Part shown: one piece after another, positions 26,570 through 37,684 of the stretch
How positions within the stretch are numbered: position 1 is the stretch's first letter
Layout: every line of letters begins with the position of its first letter
Assembly (NCBI RefSeq): GCF_002113885.1
Contig: NW_018407191.1
Location: 458,744 to 522,743, forward strand
Direction: 5' to 3'
DNA length: 64,000 bases
Origin: Mizuhopecten yessoensis
Taxonomy: Eukaryota
Notes under the pieces: model-generated
The model's database searches: none
What the model was told of the DNA's origin: nothing
What the model saw: only the letters and a program-made list of their open reading frames with translations
Translations under genes and position numbers: made by a program

Positions 26570-29500
26570 TCATATATGTAACTACAGGTGGATTAGCATT
26601 GGTTCCCTTTAATTGTAGCGTATCGGTTGGTTCCTCCAGTGATGGTCGAGGCAATGTTCTAATGATTTAACAGTTTGATGCCAGATGGAAGACTGTTCCA
26701 AGTGTCAACAGTTCTGAGACGAATTGAGTGAATTGAGTTTCTCCTTGTGTTAAGGCGCATTCTCTGTTTGTATAGTTTGAACTCTTGACCCGTTGTTGCT
26801 GTATTATTCTTATTGCATGTAATGAAAATGGTTACCTCAGGATGATATTTTCCTGTCATGATTTTAAAATGTTTGATGATGTCTTCTCTGACAGCTAATG
26901 TTTTTAGCTGCAAGAGTTAAAGTCTCTCTCTTGAAAGGACATGTCTGCAATTCCCTGTATTAATTTAGTGGCTATTTCCTGGACGTTTTCAATTGCATAT
27001 GTATGTTTTATTAGATTCGGGCTCCAAACTCGATTGCCATCTTTTAGATGAGGTCTTAAAAATCCCTTTTATAGAGCCTTAAAATGTATTACTGTATATT
27101 TCATCGTTCTTATAATCACTCCCATATTTGAATTGGCTTTACATTTTTTTTTTGCAGAAATATGAGCATTCCATCAATGTTTGTTATCAATAGCTTCATC
27201 TGAGTCTGTTTCATAATTTGTAAACAGAAGTTCCTGTCTATCATCCAACTGTAGTGTAGTCAATACCTTCTGTTTTCCCTATTCTTATTGCTATACATTT
27301 GTCTGGGCTGAAGTGTAGAAGTGTAGACGCCACTTGTTATTCCATTATTGGGCTTTGAGCAGGTCTCTCTGTAGAGCCTCACAGTCCGCAATGCTCGCTA
27401 TTGCCCGCTAGAATTTTGTATCTGTGCCTTTACTCGCTTCTTCCGGTAGTTCGTTAATGTATAACACAAATAGGGCTCGTCCAAGGACAGACCCCTGTGG
27501 GATACCACCACTTTCTTCCTTCTAAACTGACATATCTCCATTACCACCTACCCGTTGTTCCACCTAGTAACATGACCCGTGAATCCATACATACTCATTT
27601 TATGTACAAGTCTGTGATGGGGGACCTTATCAAAAGCCTTCTTAAAGTCGCAGTAGAACACATCAACGTATTTCCCCTCATCAAGTAGTCCCATCCAGTC
27701 ATCAATCACTTGTATCAATTGTATCCTTAAATAAATCCAAATTGCTTTGTACTGAAGAGCTTATTTTGTTCATGTGGTTGGTAATTGTCTTTGGCACAAT
27801 AGTTTCCAATACTTTGCAGCACATGCCTGTTTAGTGAATAGGTTTATAAATGCTCGTTAATGTACTGTCTCTTTTTTTGAAAATTGCTGTAAGATTTGCT
27901 TGCTTCCAATCCTCAGGTATCGATCCTGTTGTTAGAGAAGTATTAGATATAATGGACAACGGTTTTCTTAGGACGGAACTTAATTCTTTTGATACATGCG
28001 GTTAAAGATTATCTGGGCCTGGGGATTTCGATGTTTAAGCGTTTCCAAGGATTTTAGGGCAATGTTGGAATCAGATTTGAGATTGTTTATTATATTATCC
28101 GTTATATGGTCTATGGGATTTTGTCATTGGACTTTGCAATTCGTTTGAGGTGTGCTTCTAGTGCTTCTTTGTTGCTTTCCTGGGCATTTGTATTACCTGA
28201 CTCTGTACTTGATAATATTCTTGGTATGTTTCACTGCTCCCTGTATTTAGGAATTTTGTTCATAGCCATAGTTTCCGCTTTACTTAAGGAAAGGTTTTTC
28301 TGTCCTTTTGTGGAACTGTTCTTGACCAGCGTTCTTGGATTTACATATCAATACCGTTTTAAGCTTTTCTCTAAAATGTGGCCTTTGCGAATTTACGTCG
28401 CCAGTTAGTGGTTCAAGCTCTTATTACCAGGTATACGGTCCAATTTTCCTCAATCGTATACATCACTTGTTTTTAACATTTTTTTCTCTGCTGTAGTATA
28501 AACATTGAGGCTGCATTTTATCACAGAGTGGTTACTTTTACCTAATCGCGCATGAATATCTATACCACTGACCATCGCTTGCTCATTAGACAAGCTAAGG
28601 TCCAATACTATTGGCGTACCATGTTCTCTTCCTCTAGTGGGGGTCCTCATATGTTGGTGTAGAAAGCAGTCTTGGCGGTTTCAATAAATTTAAATTCATA
28701 ACTTTGGAATCCCGCAGTGCTATTTGGAATCCTTTATTTGCACCTATACGTAGTTTATCTGCTTTACCTCACACAATATACTCTTGGGAGGTTTGTCATA
28801 TATCGCGTTATAGATTCATTGATCATTCTTCTTCTAGGTGTGTTCTTTATTATTTTAAGATATATACTATCATACCCTTCACGGTTGTAGTTAGAAGGCG
28901 TTATGTTTCTTTCCAATGATCAAGTTTTAACCCTCTGAACAAGAATTGTCAAAGGTGTATTATCCTTTCCTTGAAGTCTGAATTCCTGTAACTTTACTTG
29001 GATTGATAAATCAGCATTTGTAACCATACAGTAAAATTCCTTAAAACTGTTTTTTGTGATTTTCCTTTCGGGTTTGTTCTAGGTTCTCCAATGTTTTGTT
29101 TTTGTTTTTTGGCAATCTTTACTTTCCTTCTTGACCACGATGGGCGTCGGACGTTGTATGTGTATTTCCCTGATTCTTGACTCCTCTTCCCAGCCTCCTT
29201 CCAACGCTGATTCTTGTTATCGTTCTTGTTTGATGATATCATTGTTTATTATGATAAGTTTGTACCTGAGTTGCTTGTGTATTTCACTTATGTATTTTAG
29301 AAGGTTTTTCTTGATTTCTGTCGTACCGAATAATGCAAGCATAGGTATTTGTTTAATTTACACGCCTTCTGTCTTTTTCTCAAACTTACAAAGTCTTGTA
29401 ACATCTATTACATTATCATCCTTGAATGCAATCTTGCATGTTTTCAGCAAACGCTTAAGTTCCTTCGCGTCTGACGTCTTCCTGACTTTTCTCTTTATAT

Positions 29501-30290
29501 GCTCTTGTTCATTAATCCTGAAAACGATCATATTGCTTTCTCTCCTTTTCCTCTCGTTGCTTTCTGAGATGACAGTCTGAGACTAATGTGCGTGGTCCCG
29601 CTCGGAGCGCTCAGGCGGCTATCTTTTGGGTGTTTTTGTCAATTCCTCGTTGACTGTGCTCCGAACTGTAGACTCGTCAAAGTTGCTAATGTTTTTCTTC
29701 AATTCTCGTATCATTGTGTTTAAAATTTTCCATTATCTCTGCATTTTTTTGCTCAATCTTGAGTTCCTAGAAAAAGGTTTCTCTCGATTATGACTCATGC
29801 ATGGTGCACATAGCCACATTAGTGAAAGGAAGCGTTCAGTGCTGCGTGTTCATTGTCTCCAATATCGATATGTTGCAGACAGTAGTTATCCCGGTATCTT
29901 TTACATTAGATCCGTTTTGTGTTGGACTCGGTCACCAATCGGTTACAGATGTTATATGACCAGCATTACTCTCCTTTCAAAGGAGGAGAAAATGGCGTAC
30001 ATTTTCAGACTGTTTCGCCACCATACTGCCTCTGGAACGGGACTCCCTCACAGGCCGGGTACCGCCTTACGTTTTATTTATGTCGCAATGATCGCTGTTG
30101 CCTCCGCCATGATGCTTCAGAAAATGATATCGGCGTTCACCCAGAACCGTGTAATAGCTCGGCTTGGAGCTTAGAAATGTCGTTTTACACTTATTTTCCA
30201 AACTATGCAATAATCAGGTGCATCTAAACTTTTGTATACTTTTGTTTTTTTGTCTCAGACTTGCCGTAGCCGAGAAAAAAAGTATCCGTT
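26570..30290 (-). mobile_element. Decayed near-full-length CR1-clade LINE (ORF1 plus APE-RT ORF2)
   Basis: Minus-strand remnants: GIPQGSVLG (~27480-27508), PEDWKQANLTAIFKK (~27875-27918), LDLSLSN..GKSNHSVI endonuclease end (28515-28610), RERRESNMIVFRI of ORF1 (~29515-29560) and RTVDTWNSLP C-terminus (~26685-26720). Many stops and frameshifts. Confidence 0.88.
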
Positions 30291-30377: not shown

Positions 30378-31332
30378 ACAGTTGTGGGATCGCACAACGT
30401 TACACGATGTGCGGTGTGCGCACGATGTGTGCACGAAGTGCAAAGGAATAAAAAAATGAACTATCATTGTTTGCGCACATTTGTGCGGACGATCGATTAA
30501 CGTTGTGATAACAATCGCGGTTGGTGTAAATTGAGGAATGGCTTAACAGTATATACGGTTTCGTGTTTAAACATATAAACTTGATTTTTTTTAGTTGTTT
30601 CCATATTCTAGCTACAACTATAAGCTTATCTTTCTGTCTATACCTTCTTAAATTAAGAAATGGTGCTTTCGGTGTGTTTTAAACGACCTTAATCGACACA
30701 TGAAAAATTACAACACAGTCTCGGCAACACAGGTAAACATAGCCACTTTGTACCTGGACCGTAGTTTTTCCCCGCTTGAGGCACTTACGTAACTCGCCAA
30801 GGTGTGAAAACCAGGTGAAGGGGGGCTATCTACCAAGACATATGCAAATAACAAATACTAAACGTCCAGTTGTGTTTTCATAACGGTCATACGGTATCAC
30901 GTAGCAGCTCTTTGTGTCAGGCACAGGCCAGGTAAAACTCCGGTCACTCATTAAATTGTTATTTACCTGTTCTGTTACCTACATGTAGCTAGGAGCCAAA
31001 TCCATTCTTGACAATCTAACGGTCACTGTTTACTATGTTACACGCATTGTAAAATTGTACATAATCTTAATTATTGTGATGAGAAATTACAGTGATATAT
31101 ACAGTGTACATTATTGTACACGAGCCTTCCGTATTTTTTTCATTCCGTAATATTGATAAACAAAGTGCACCAAATCGCACAGTTGTGCGGAGAGAAGCGC
31201 ACAACGGGGCGAACGATTGTTAAATCGCCCAGTTGTGCGCACCATGCGTGAACGATGTGCGGACGGTGTGTGAACGATGTATGCACGGTGTGCGCACGGT
31301 ATTTTCGGTGCGTTGTGCGGTCACACAACTGT
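30378..31332. repeat. Inverted pair of GC-rich blocks with 11-bp subrepeats (probable MITE remnants)
   Basis: ACAGTTGTGGGATCGCACAACG (30378-30399) is near-complementary to CGTTGTGCGGTCACACAACTGT (31311-31332). ACGATGTGCGC-type units occur in both blocks. Confidence 0.5.
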
Positions 31333-31595
31333 ATTTCCAAATGGGAAAGGAACATAGCGTGTTGCAAATATTGCACATTATTGCATGCGTCTCTTATGGT
31401 TTGAATTTGAAGTTGCGTTAAGTAGTCTCTCTAATATCATGTAAATAAAATGATGTCTTGTGTAAGACAACACCTTTTTCATATCAACTCGCATTTAAAT
31501 AGAAACGTTAGAGATGTCTTATCTTACCAAATGTTGAGTTCACACTAACGGCTACCGGGGACATACCATTTGTAATAGATTCAAGAAACTAAAAC

Positions 31596-31750
31596 ATGTC
31601 TGCTGTTCTGTTGTTGTTGATTGGAATAATACTTACAGGTGTGTCAGATGCATGGAAGAGTGCAGAAGAACTGCATAAGTTGCAGACGAAACTCGAGGGG
31701 ATCAGCCAACTCACACTGCTGGTTACCGTCAACGATACCTGGAACCCGAG
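31596..31750 (+). CDS. Secreted protein coding exon 1 (signal peptide)
   Basis: MSAVLLLLIGIILTGVSDAWKSAEELHKLQTKLEGISQLTLLVTVNDTWNP; donor AG|GTAATC. Confidence 0.82.
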
Positions 31751-34700
31751 GTAATCAAAGTGCTTACTTTTACATTAACGTGCTATCAAATATATTGATA
31801 TATTCACCATCTCATGGTGGCATTCATATTGGCTATGAATGTCATACACCGACTGTTGACGTCATCATTATTATGACGTCATAATTGTTACGTTATATAC
31901 CACTAGCCCCTTCTTGGCGATGGCTGTTCTATTTACTGAACAAGCATACACAACACATACATTATTTGAACTAAATGCTGAATGATACTAAGTGTAATTG
32001 AATTTTCTATGAGATTAACAGAATCCAAAAATGGTAAATATAAATATTGAACTGCTAGCGTACTTCATTGAATTTGCCTTTGTCAAGTCGGTATTCATAT
32101 TTCCTATGAATGCTAACTGAAAGTAGTTCAATATATATTCATATTTTTATATCCCGCATCGAAGGTTATTAAGACTGGACAATGATTCTACTTTTGAATT
32201 GAACCAACAGAGCTATCTAGATATGTAAATAAGCTGTGACTGTAACAAATGTTGTACTCGCATGGATAGATTGGTAATATTTGGGAATTCATCTTTTTAT
32301 TCTGTCTTTTTATAGAGCCATTATATAAATGTATTCCGTGAAGGTTCGGTAAAATTACATTTGATTCATGTGCAACATCGCTAACTGTCAACATAGTTCA
32401 AAGCCCTCTCCAAATTTTGTAATACAGAAAATGTAGGGAAAACACTAGGATTAGAATGTTTAACTTTACTCAGTGCAGGTAGGTAGATATTTGCCAATAT
32501 ATATCGTTAAACTTGCAATATCCTATATAAAACATCAATATATATGTGAAGCAGGTTTTCGCTGCATACTTCTTTGATGGGTTCATTTCACATGAATGAT
32601 TCTTGCTGTTATCAGCTTTTGATTCACTTGAGTTGTGCGGCAATGCACATAGGCCTTATTTCCATTACCCAATAGATAAATATTTAATGCACTTTTGTTT
32701 TTAAATTGCAGCGGGTGCATTCAAACGATAAAAACTCCACTCTTGACTCTAGGGAAACGCTTTAGCCAGATCGAGGTGGGGACTTGTGACTATGGAGCAA
32801 TTACTGTCAGAATGGTAAAGGCAGGCAATGGACGAGATGCTATGGTAGGTTTTGTGCTTCTAGGTAGCAGTGTACAGTATAATTGGCCCGACTCTGATAA
32901 ACAAGGCACATGTCGAGGAAATGTAAACACAGCGGATTTACCCTACACAACACATGTATACATGTATATATATTTGTAAACTGCATTACATTTACAATAC
33001 ATATAAAGTACTGAGAAGTGTATAAACCTCTTTTTTCTATGTATGTCACTTGTGTGAAAACCATGGTTACCACATCAAAAATTACCAAAAAATGCNAAAG
33101 TTGTAAAACTTTATTTTTTTGCAATTTTGCGTCGTGTGCTGTTGTCAAACTTTTACCTCCTGTAAAGCTAGCTTTTCATGTGTACGCACCCTTTCGGATT
33201 ATGGCCAAAATTTTATTCTCGAACCAAAAAAATCTTCTTTCTTTTTTAACAATGTGAAGCTCACATAGCCCACTTCATCATGCTTATACCAATTTTAGTA
33301 CAGTTTTATTTTTATATATTTTTTTACACATCATTATACAGGGGTTAGCCACTTAACAAAAATATCACCCATGGCCACAACCCTCTACTGTACACTGCTA
33401 CCCTAAAAATGATATAGCTTAATAAGAACAACTACCAAATTTCCATTGGATAAGTAGCTGATATATTCCCTTGTGAAGTTGTGTTTGATTTGAATTGATT
33501 ACTGTGAAAACAATTATACATTATTATCATTTTTGCATGGTGTGTGTTATAATGATATGACTCTTTAAGAGTATTTCATTTTATAACAAAGAAAGACTGA
33601 TTCATGTAGTGAACACATTGCATTTGAAAGAAAAAACAAAATAATGCACGCACCCCTTCCCACACACACAATTTCAACAAAGAGGACAAAACCAAACATT
33701 TACACGAAAAGGCAGGAACAGAATCTGAGGAGGCACTAGACGAAATAGATTTTAAGACCAGATTTAAAAAATATATATATAAAAACAAAATCTGAAGAAC
33801 ATATATTAAAATCAATTAAAGTTGAGTTATTCCTGTGTATCTTATTTTGGTGTTAAAAAATAAAATAAAAGAAACGTCTATGAACGAAATCGGAACACGA
33901 TCATGAACTTATCTCAATTATTACAATTAAAAGTCGAGATTCGAAATGTTTCCATCAATCACTTATGTGTAATAATGTTTTGAACATATGTCACGATATA
34001 CACATTGAGGTGAACTTTACTGTATCTAATTGAATTGATTTGTGTATCTTCGTTTCATCCAAATTCTACAACACTAAAATGATGAACCGAATTCCAAACA
34101 AAGCTGTTAATGTAAATTTTGATTGTGCAGTGTTTTCCTAGGAGGCTGACATCCACCTGTATTCAACATCAACAATAAACTCTCGACTACCCCAACGTAG
34201 TCCTCCTCATTCAACGGAATTATATCCTTGATAATCATAATAGATAATGCGACTTTTGAAAAATGTAATAAAAAGACAAATTGAGGAGAAATATAAAGTC
34301 ATTGCAATGAAATTAACGACAAGCTTAACAACGTTGTACCTTAATATATTTGCATGTAAAATATACGAAACAAAGAACAGGTTTATATCTTTCCTTTTGT
34401 TTCACGCTTGACGAACGTCCGAAAAAAAGTTCTACTATACTAATACTGTGGTTGTATTTTTGTGATTTGGGTAAAGAAAAAAGAGTAAAGACGTTTTTGA
34501 ATATGTCATTACATGATATAAGCTCTTTACACGACATCTTGCGGATGATACAAGTAGACTAGTCTGATGTCTTTGATGACGATGAAAAGAATCAAGCGCC
34601 AGCGTAACGGCACAATCAACAGGCTTTGAAGATTGGTGTAACTCTTTTGTAATCTTCAAAAGGAAATGTATCAGCCTGGTAATTGGTCAGGGTTTCATTC

Positions 34701-35692
34701 CTGATTGGTGTTTTATTCCTGAAACCAATCAAATAGCTCATCGCGAGCCTTCGATTTTGTCATGACATATTCAAGGGGTGCAGAACATATATTTGTATGT
34801 AGAACGGGGTCCATGGATTTCGAGAATTGTGATAAGACATAAACAGCCATTTAACTCAATAAAAAGTAGGCGCTACTGAGGACCAAGCGTTTTCTCCACA
34901 ATGTATGATTCCCTCATTTCGAATCCAGGAACACGTGTAAAATTCAAATTTTGTGGTCAACAGTATGTTTTCATCTTCGAACAGGAATTTGCGATTAATT
35001 TTTATCCTATTATATAATTAGGCTAAAGCATTTTATCGCAATAAAAACTCAAAAGTGCAATGCACACTTCAGCACAAAAACTGGTTTATGAGATTGTCGT
35101 CTGTGGTCTAAGTGTCTGTGACAATATTACATAAAATTGATATATAAACAACGAAGTAATAACGATTGTGCAGACAATGAAATTTGTCAAATTTCCCAGG
35201 CGATTCGTCCTTTGTCAGGAATCAAACATCGAACAATTAAATAGCACGAAAGAAAAGACAAGAAACAATTATGAAAGAGTTATTGATTATATTTATAATA
35301 AACAGTCCACCTTTAAATTGAATACTAAAGTTAGATATTAAAATTTCTTGACAAAATGTAAACCTTCATGCTACCCTGTCCAGACTGAGATATCAGTGAG
35401 ATGACACTGTAAAATGGATCCATTAACTGAGGACCATAGTTTTGTGATGACGCCACTTGATTAACATATATTGTTTTTTGTTTTATAGAGTTTGGATGTC
35501 ATGTTCGAATCACACGTGATTGTGGACGCCTCCCACCCAGAATGTCACTTTAACTGGAACGGATCATACCTTGTACCAACAGCTGAAAACCCTAAGAAAT
35601 CCCTACTTCCGGGTTGTTTTGTAATGGATTCTCGTGAGGGATATCACATGACATACTACTGGTTTCATCTGCTGGACTGGCATTTTGGTTAA
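31596..35692 (+). CDS. Uncharacterised secreted protein, 163 aa, 3 coding exons: join(31596..31750,32712..32844,35489..35692)
   Basis: AAAC-ATG start; signal peptide MSAVLLLLIGIILTGVSDA; both introns GT-AG with matching phases (2, then 0); pyrimidine tracts at both acceptors; TAA at 35690-35692; AATAAA at 35792-35797. Confidence 0.85.
32712..32844 (+). CDS. Secreted protein coding exon 2
   Basis: Acceptor TTGCAG|; (S)GCIQTIKTPLLTLGKRFSQIEVGTCDYGAITVRMVKAGNGRDAM; donor ATG|GTAGGT. Confidence 0.82.
32863..33402. mobile_element. Non-autonomous DNA transposon (MITE) with perfect 17-bp TIRs
   Basis: GGTAGCAGTGTACAGTA (32863-32879) / TACTGTACACTGCTACC (33386-33402); CTA on both flanks as a candidate 3-bp TSD; internal n at 33096. 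Confidence 0.8.
35489..35692 (+). CDS. Secreted protein terminal coding exon
   Basis: Acceptor TTTTTTGTTTTATAG|; SLDVMFESHVIVDASHPECHFNWNGSYLVPTAENPKKSLLPGCFVMDSREGYHMTYYWFHLLDWHFG*. Confidence 0.82.
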   Translation, partial: SLDVMFESHVIVDASHPECHFNWNGSYLVPTAENPKKSLLPGCFVMDSREGYHMTYYWFHLLDWHFG

Positions 35693-36079
35693 AAGATCAC
35701 TGCATTTGTTAACAATACAACTATTTACAAATTAGATGATTTTATTTATTCAATTCATTATCTAAGGCAATTCTTTATTAACAAATCTGTTAATAAAAGG
35801 AAATATCAGAAAGCAATGTTCTTAATCATCCCTAATGAAAAATTAGCACAGTGAAGAAACTTGATGTTCCATATTAGAAATTAACTAAATATGCAATGCA
35901 GTGACGTCAAACTTACGAATTCATCATGATAGCGCTAGATTTTAAATATTATTAAAATATTCCATGTACAATTTTTGGGAGAAGTCCTAGTAAGTCGTAA
36001 CAACTTGTGCCCAATCCCTTTAATTGTTTAATGTCAGTAGAATAGGTTAAATATAACCATTTACTATATCAATAATTCC

Positions 36080-36560
36080 ATAGCTATGCGTATGATAACA
36101 CCAACAAGAAAAATCTGTAAATGGCAATGGGACAAAAAGATTTTAGATGTTACGTCTAAAGAAGAAGACTTGAAATCCAACATTCTAAATATTATCAGAT
36201 ACCTGTTGAATCCTTCTACAGTTCTACAGTCAATTTTAGACCATGTTATACAAAGGTCTGTATTCATGCTGATACAATCCAAAAATGTTAAGAGCAAGCC
36301 TTTTTGTATTAGGTTCGAGCCATCGGTTGTTATTTATCTATCAATTGAATGAATACAACGAAAACAACTTTCTTGATATTTTGAGCCGATTAATGCTGCC
36401 GTTAAGTGAAGTTTTCATTCTACTAACGACGTCTTTGTGTCTGTCTTCGTTGTTCAGCGGGAAGCAAATACAAAATGTACACATTTAACTGAAATCAAAA
36501 GTCAAGTGAATAAATTTCGATTATTATAAAGAGAAGTGAATGTAATTCTTTGCATTTGTT
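36080..36560 (+). mobile_element. Possible L1/Tx1-type LINE ORF2 C-terminal remnant
   Basis: PTRKICKWQW...KPFC...FILL pattern loosely resembles the Cys-rich Tx1 C-terminus; highly decayed. Confidence 0.3.
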
Positions 36561-37684
36561 TTTAACATTTTAAGCCTGCTTTTCTGTCTGTTATTTATAT
36601 AACAAGTTGTTTCTACTTTTTCTTCGTGGTCAACTTGTGTTATCATTCATAAGTTGATATCATATAAAAAAATGTTCAATATGTTGACAGTAATAATTCA
36701 TAAAAAGACCAATTTTCAAATCCAGTCTGTCGATAAAAAACATTTTTTTTCTATGATGCAGGTTTTCCATTCTTTAGCTGTTCTGATAATAACACAATTT
36801 AGAACAGCACACAGATTTTGACGAAACCTTCCGTCAACACTGGCTCCTAGGTTTGACTGGTTCGGTTACAAAATAAAACAAAATTGTCGATTTCGATATA
36901 TATGCCGATTCGTGCAAAGATATTCTTAATATACTACAATGGAATCGTTTATTTTTTCATTGCTAAGGTAATTTAACTTTTGCGGAGTTTACAAATGCAT
37001 TTAAGAGACAGTGGGGTTATATCTTCCCGAGCTTAATAAGCGTTGTTCAATTGACGTCATAAAATATTATCCCGGTGCCATGTGGTAAAAAAAAAAACAA
37101 GTGGTGCAAGACAGATTCTACAAATATCATTTTCATTTGATATTTCTACTATACCCTACGGTAAAAGTACCTTAACCTTGACTTCTGATGAGGAACATGC
37201 TTGTTGATTTGGTTGGCCTATCTATGTAGTGGAATGATGATTTCCAGTGAAATTTTATACCTAAAGATTGAACGAATTATGATAACTTTTTTTTTTTTTT
37301 TTAAAGTATTGAAAAGTTCGTTTAATGGGCGTGAACATTGAACCTACACCTTTTTGCTCTTCAAATGATAGGGCATTGTCGATAAACGCTCCCATGTCAT
37401 TTTGAATCTCAGAACCATTCGTCTTCAATTCGGAAAATCTTTTCATAACCGTTCTGAGAGCGTCTTATAACTTCGAGCCCACGCATCACTCTGCACATTT
37501 CAGTATCACCAGCAAAACGTATCCGGAAGAGTTGACAATATCTGGAAGATGTATGATATTACAAAGAGAGTGGGTCCCAGGACGGTCCTTGGGGTGACTT
37601 TGGGGTCTTAAAGTGAAACATGATCTCATCAAAAATGTTGTGAAATCTTAAAAACACGGAATGTAAAGATACATGTAGATATAA

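Follow-up and report, generated by a model that had tools for sequence, protein, structure and literature searches.

LOC110454260 of the scallop Mizuhopecten yessoensis belongs to an ancient, unnamed family of putative small secreted all-beta proteins

Small, secreted, all-beta proteins with an up-and-down strand order are known from the calycin barrels (lipocalins, FABPs and avidins) and the LolA-like half-barrels. The ependymin-related proteins of molluscs are secreted glycoproteins with four conserved cysteines. In bacteria, the C-domains of secretins and the outer-membrane barrels with eight strands (InvG, GspD, OmpX, NspA, OmpW and PagL) have strands that are long, twisted and antiparallel, and their C-terminal strand is aromatic. 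Here, we analysed a 64,000-nt stretch of the Mizuhopecten yessoensis genome (the window; contig NW_018407191.1, positions 458,744 to 522,743, forward strand), an AT-rich, eukaryotic DNA with a GC content of 0.31-0.43 that carries the gene LOC110454260. The predicted product resembles each of these groups: it would be small, secreted, all-beta and up-and-down in strand order like the calycins and LolA, a secreted glycoprotein with four conserved cysteines like the ependymin-related proteins, and long-stranded with an aromatic last strand like the bacterial barrels. Unlike lipocalins, it has neither the G-x-W signature nor a C-terminal helix. Unlike the bacterial barrels, it has a eukaryotic secretory leader and is predicted to be a soluble protein with disulfides and a polar, glycosylated outer face.

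Read from the sequence, three coding exons (Table 1) join in phase through GT..AG introns, and the separate translation of each exon gives exactly the three peptide pieces proposed in an earlier note on this DNA. That note had presented the gene as hidden. However, the product is identical, letter for letter, to XP_021359361.1 / OWF47529.1 / UniProt A0A210QFP8 (163 amino acids), and the gene is already in GenBank/RefSeq with exactly the proposed model; it is unnamed, not hidden. Its public name is uncharacterized protein LOC110454260 [Mizuhopecten yessoensis], and the record holds no family, domain or function. The database protein (P0122, 163 amino acids), which was recovered by searching with one full-length family match and was used in the full-length analyses, matches all three exon translations at 100% identity. 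Exon 1, which had been described as missing from the open reading frame (ORF) track, does appear there when the cut-off is set at 30 amino acids. It encodes the leader (residues 1-19) and, according to the AlphaFold2 (AF2) model, a short amphipathic helix and the first beta strand with V-N-D-T-W and the N46 sequon. The first base of exon 2 (C) completes the AGC codon of Ser52, and this exon contributes Cys54, Cys77 and a C-D-x-G turn. Exon 3 contributes the other two cysteines (Cys115 and Cys139), the N120 sequon and, at the C-terminus, the invariant hairpin D-S-R-E-G-Y-H...Y-W-F.

The proposed splicing was confirmed in transcript contigs of two studies. Four public runs were aligned to positions 31400-35900, and the Logan contigs X1 (1327 nt, study P1, 2024) and X9 (607 nt, study P4, 2015) both carried both junctions. 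The contig joints fall at 31748>32710 and 32843>35488; moving the cut by +2 and +1, respectively, places them at 31750/32712 and 32844/35489, both with GT..AG borders. Exons 1 and 2 showed zero mismatches in either contig. Because these contigs contain no intron, they originate from spliced RNA. The X1 contig, 758 nt of which aligned up to 35900, extends approximately 570 nt farther in the 3' direction, indicating that the AATAAA element downstream of the stop codon does not mark the sole 3' end. Additionally, in 14 runs from six studies the word share was 0.14-0.20 of the stretch, the level expected for exon-only sequence, and four other runs with a share of 0.58-0.67 are probably genomic DNA. 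Word depth was moderate (~32-37) in the runs holding the transcript.

A profile derived from exon 3 of LOC110454260 and of its paralogue was searched against 1.84 billion representatives. It identified 92 clusters (50% identity) at E <= 1e-3, a lower bound for the family, including 64 at E <= 1e-10, mostly proteins of 145-200 amino acids matched at the C-terminus; a full-length profile scored P0122 at 1.3e-54. Conserved homologues, whose lack the earlier note had listed among the outcomes that would refute the gene, were found, and they extend across phyla. Members were detected in bivalves (scallops, oysters, Mytilus, Dreissena, Mercenaria, Mactra, Tegillarca, Solemya and Potamilus), gastropods (Haliotis, Patella, Littorina, Batillaria, Babylonia, Gigantopelta and Pomacea), the chiton Liolophura, the brachiopod Lingula, the acorn worms Saccoglossus and Glandiceps (hemichordates) and Branchiostoma. 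Named members also came from sponges (Amphimedon and Dysidea) and a choanoflagellate (Salpingoeca macrocollata), and many ocean metatranscriptome and metagenome proteins also belong to the family. No vertebrate, arthropod, nematode, cnidarian, echinoderm or annelid was named in these hit lists, which is not proof of absence. Judged from sequence, this is an ancient family of presumptive small secreted all-beta glycoproteins and not a mollusc novelty.

All members were named "uncharacterized" or "hypothetical" at source, with the exception of P0130 (JGI, 155 amino acids), which was labelled 'secretion-regulating guanine nucleotide exchange factor'; this label was almost certainly wrongly transferred. 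Local clusters or tandem duplication were observed in Tegillarca (KUTeg_018253-018261), Mactra, Branchiostoma and the scallop pair described below. Two members from Logan contigs (P0169 and P0170; ~317 amino acids) contain two tandem domain copies behind one leader. Two environmental members are intron-less genes on eukaryote-like contigs, one located by major facilitator superfamily (MFS) and GH79-like genes and the other by a long terminal repeat retroelement. On a compact, GC-rich, eukaryote-like contig (L016 1913-4628), the neighbours of such an intron-less member are an MFS transporter and two gene calls of GH79-like type (glucuronidase/heparanase N-terminal). In some protist members, Cys-rich N-terminal extensions (residues 20-80 of P0073 and 35-160 of P0084) show a C-G...C...C-C-S spacing recalling hevein-type chitin-binding modules, a reading that was dropped for want of Pfam support.

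Conservation was counted over 79 aligned sequences, with a wider alignment of 90. The four cysteines to which the earlier note had pointed are near-invariant (78-79 of 79 sequences). Of its two N-glycosylation sequons, NDT (N46), part of V-N-D-T-W in the first strand, is kept in 71/79, and NGS (N120), within a W-N-G-x-Y motif, in 49/79; both are candidate sites as read from the letters. Further conserved motifs are the C-D-x-G-P turn, the loop S-S-V-I-E-D-A-S-P-P-x-C and L-P-x-C. The aromatic C-terminus, also singled out before, proved to be the most conserved motif of the family, a hairpin with the consensus D-S-R-E-G-Y-H-M-T-Y-Y-W-F. All the family-defining features (four Cys, V-N-D-T-W, C-D-x-G and D-S-R-E-G-Y-H...Y-W-F), which are conserved in at least 90% of the 79-90 members, are present in LOC110454260.

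Six-frame searches of the whole assembly, one per exon, revealed one paralogue in the genome, LOC110454209 (P0101), on the same strand 37.7 kb downstream (G000:C3864:529446-532109). It likewise has three exons with intron phases 2 and 0, and its identity to LOC110454260 is 43% in exon 1, 41% in exon 2 and 63% in exon 3 (~50% overall). The two genes share the four Cys, the N46 sequon, the C-terminal motif and the exon structure, and the paralogue retains the consensus loop residues that LOC110454260 has replaced. Two further contigs, G000:C80208 and G000:C80960 (2.4 and 3.1 kb), duplicate paralogue exons 1-2 and exon 3 with equal scores and are probably uncollapsed haplotype pieces of the assembly.

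Orthologues of both scallop genes occur in Ylistrum, Pecten and Argopecten. A maximum-likelihood tree resolved two clades, A (LOC110454260; support 100/100) and B (the paralogue; 97/93), each of which contains the four scallop genera, and therefore the duplication predates their split. The Pecten maximus pair lies 18 kb apart with the same order and strand as in Mizuhopecten. A dN/dS comparison had been recommended in the earlier note; against the Pecten maximus orthologue, compared exon by exon with the counts summed, dN was 0.088, dS 1.29 and dN/dS 0.068 (0.046 for the mature part and 0.029 for exon 3 alone). LOC110454260 is under strong purifying selection. Moreover, the homologue of Branchiostoma lanceolatum also has three coding exons; its intron 2 matches exactly in both aligned position and phase (Met|Ser), and its intron 1 has the same phase, offset by one codon. 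The exon plan is therefore older than the protostome-deuterostome split. The sponge homologue gene has different exon boundaries. The Branchiostoma lanceolatum homologue (L014 6001-7581, plus strand) falls within a DOMON/copper-monooxygenase (DBH-like) gene that spans 1111-10619 on the minus strand. Taken together, the gene is confirmed as real, spliced as proposed, transcribed, constrained and a member of a deep family.

The signal peptide claimed earlier remains a prediction: the N-terminus reads as a hydrophobic leader with n/h/c organisation and a -3/-1 site of small residues (S-D-A|W), and a crude heuristic found an N-terminal hydrophobic run in 60 of the 79 members. The composition of the product is that of a globular, non-repetitive protein (isoelectric point 6.2; grand average of hydropathicity -0.19). 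From these features and the model, we infer leader cleavage after S-D-A, a glycan on N46 and two disulfides.

The expectation of a compact beta-rich protein agrees with the AF2 prediction, in which the product is compact and all-beta. With the 79-sequence alignment, the full protein reached a predicted local distance difference test score (pLDDT) of 93.1 and a predicted template modelling score (pTM) of 0.83; with 90 sequences, the mature part reached 93.8 and 0.87. In the model, eight strands (Table 1) follow a helix formed by residues 23-33, which in the full version runs on from the leader without a break. Polar and hydrophobic residues alternate in strands 1, 4 and 5, with the sequon on the polar outward face; as modelled, this alternation is typical of soluble proteins built around a hydrophobic core. 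The predicted fold is of the long-stranded up-and-down beta kind and has no visible homologue.

The earlier note had been unable to assign the protein to a named family, and neither could we. Pfam scans of the three exon translations, ten full-length homologues and all 90 aligned members gave chance-level matches only, NCBIfam had no match for the family, and a search of PDB sequences with the family profile returned one chance match (E 1.9). In Foldseek searches of the full and mature models against PDB, no match reached E <= 1e-3; the highest-ranking row was the periplasmic domain of CcsBA (E 5e-3 to 7e-3; template modelling score, TM, 0.32-0.35), which was unconvincing. BFVD viral structures gave no match, and VIA-align assigned no named family to the predicted protein. 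In the ESM Atlas, whose single-sequence model of the protein was poor (pLDDT 0.35), the best match by shape had a TM of 0.51, and scores by features were below 0.9.

Specific candidates fared no better. Weak Foldseek and VIA rows linked the scallop protein to FABP, ApoM, avidins and LolA. Membership of the lipocalins or calycins was rejected, with no Pfam Lipocalin or Avidin match in the 90 members. For Ependymin (PF00811) or a LolA-like assignment, there was no Pfam match, and the LolA rows had TM values of 0.25-0.37 and E values above 0.06. The ML (MD-2-related lipid-recognition), C1q/TNF and known invertebrate lectin domains were all absent from the Pfam-A scan of members.

The explanation that very probably accounts for these results as a whole is that LOC110454260 is an expressed gene for a secreted, disulfide-braced all-beta domain of an ancient family; extracellular binding or carriage is its favoured, though less certain, role. 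In this scheme, the 163-residue precursor would lose its 19-residue leader on entering the secretory pathway, leaving a protein of ~16 kDa whose N-terminus forms a short helix ahead of a single compact all-beta domain, built from eight long strands in antiparallel order. The four near-invariant Cys would brace the domain, and an N-glycan would be attached to the conserved Asn of the first strand. If a simple up-and-down meander is assumed, as in the structural neighbours, loops 48-53, 75-77, 105-113 and 146-148 would share one end of the bundle and carry nearly all the invariant polar and aromatic residues, with the variable loops 60-67 and 89-95 at the opposite end; the clustering of the conserved motifs at one pole follows from this assumption. 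N-D-T-W, C-D-x-G-P, S-S-V-I-E-D-A-S-P-P-x-C and D-S-R-E-G-Y-H, in the loops at that end, might then form a ligand site. Expression would be limited to some tissues, stages or conditions. The binding or carrier role taken by itself, which leans on the model, is plausible at somewhat below even chances. A further idea, that the family represents an undescribed fold or domain of the animal stem lineage whose invariant Asp/Ser/Arg/Glu/His/Tyr/Trp pole is a new extracellular catalytic or receptor site, is speculative and appears doubtful.

Several observations weigh against this explanation. Two raw RNA-seq runs (X19 and X24; ~12 million records each) contained no read on the exons, and expression is therefore not ubiquitous. 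The LOC110454260 clade deviates from the family consensus at the conserved loop positions A81, H105, V108 and H112, and it may have shifted in function. In addition, a literature search with 24 gene, protein and UniProt identifiers found no paper on any member.

Among other functions, a small extracellular enzyme such as a hydrolase, with Asp, Ser, Arg, Glu and His of D-S-R-E-G-Y-H together with Asp78 and Ser104 as the active site, was considered. The polar residues in question are kept in at least 75-90% of the 79 sequences, from choanoflagellate to amphioxus, which is unusually strict for a mere carrier. However, no hydrolase family was matched by sequence, the match to PagL was no better than those to dozens of unrelated barrels, and S144 and H149 probably lie on opposite faces according to the strand alternation of the model. 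An enzyme is thus unlikely.

A role in innate immunity, as a lectin-like or membrane-active recognition or effector protein that binds glycans or lipid surfaces through conserved, exposed tryptophans in its last strand, seems similarly improbable. Tandem duplication with local clusters in several species, the two-domain versions P0169 and P0170, the Cys-rich N-terminal extension of P0073 and P0084, and a transcript missing from two RNA runs and present in others, as for an inducible or tissue-specific gene, all speak for it. Nevertheless, immune recognition genes usually diversify, whereas a dN/dS of 0.07 and deeply conserved surface motifs show the reverse pattern, the scallop has only two copies, and no lectin or pore-former family or fold was matched.

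It is even harder to see the product as a structural part of the extracellular matrix, mucus, egg coat or shell without a specific ligand, and we regard this as quite improbable. The hosts do make abundant extracellular material, the protein is presumably secreted and glycosylated, and transcript depth was moderate in the runs holding the transcript, whereas the product is globular and non-repetitive with an ordinary composition, the family also occurs in unicellular eukaryotes, and the strictly conserved polar residues point to a specific site. Finally, a chance ORF alignment or a decaying pseudogene is refuted by the spliced transcripts and the dN/dS of 0.07, with intact orthologues in four scallop genera and homologues across phyla also speaking against it.

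The gene is annotated and in that respect ordinary; it is the family that is blank, being conserved, constrained and confidently foldable without a Pfam model, structural relative, name or paper. The earlier view of LOC110454260 as the best candidate here for something undescribed accordingly holds for the family, which has neither name nor paper, and not for the gene, which is annotated and whose relatives reach sponges and a choanoflagellate. We consider it a good candidate for definition as a new domain family. Families with members ranging from choanoflagellates and sponges to amphioxus, but not named among vertebrate or ecdysozoan matches, are one source of overlooked extracellular biology of marine animals. 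If the domain were defined and its structure and ligand established, hundreds of "uncharacterized" records would gain a function, and such work would also yield a new small disulfide-stabilised beta scaffold.

Table 1. Features of the LOC110454260 locus (window coordinates) and strands of the predicted protein (residue numbers)
Feature	Position	Strand	Remarks
Putative TATA-like box, TTTAAATA	31494..31501	+	37-44 nt upstream of first transcribed base (31538, X1)
5' untranslated region, minimum extent	31538..31595	+	Transcript contigs start at 31538 (X1) and 31571 (X9)
Coding exon 1	31596..31750	+	155 nt; ends in phase 2, AG|GTAATC
Intron 1	31751..32711	+	961 nt, GT..AG, phase 2; joint in X1 and X9 contigs
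Coding exon 2	32712..32844	+	133 nt; after TTGCAG; ends in phase 0, ATG|GTAGGT
Intron 2	32845..35488	+	2644 nt, GT..AG, phase 0; masked N and interspersed repeats; joint in X1 and X9 contigs
Coding exon 3	35489..35692	+	Preceded by TTTTATAG; stop codon TAA at 35690-35692
3' untranslated region, minimum	35693..35900	+	AATAAA at 35792-35797
High-copy young interspersed repeat	32870..33400	.	Inside intron 2; not in the gene product
Predicted strands (AF2)	36-47, 54-59, 68-74, 78-88, 96-104, 114-119, 138-145, 149-162		

For the interspersed repeat in intron 2, a first look at the genome gave 1641 candidate copies; those that were scored were 91-99% identical. Most copies are ~110 nt longer between query positions 230 and 228, where the intron-2 copy has masked N. 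In the aligned RNA, this stretch showed many variant letters and loose ends, and the intronic depth of X19 and X24 at 32860-33400 is explained by reads from other copies of the repeat. Also within intron 2, a 40-nt island (34745-34784) had very high RNA depth, with loose ends that differed on either side in each of the four runs, and it looks like a short conserved core common to many transcribed repeat copies.

Rfam gave no match on 30500-37000, and the three longest ORFs of the window (599-1246, 4699-5244 and 29131-29580), none of which adjoins the gene, had no Pfam match. A GT/GC-rich tandem repeat with an 11/22-nt period occupies 31234-31298, ~240 nt upstream of the transcript start. The palindrome TGACGTCA, the consensus of the cAMP response element (CRE), is present in 11 copies in the window, where 0.94 would be expected, at 31857-31864, 31874-31881, 35902-35909 and eight other sites. 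The intron-1 pair is spaced 17 nt apart, ~320 nt downstream of the transcript start, and a copy also closely precedes exon 3 in the paralogue (L005, about 4868).

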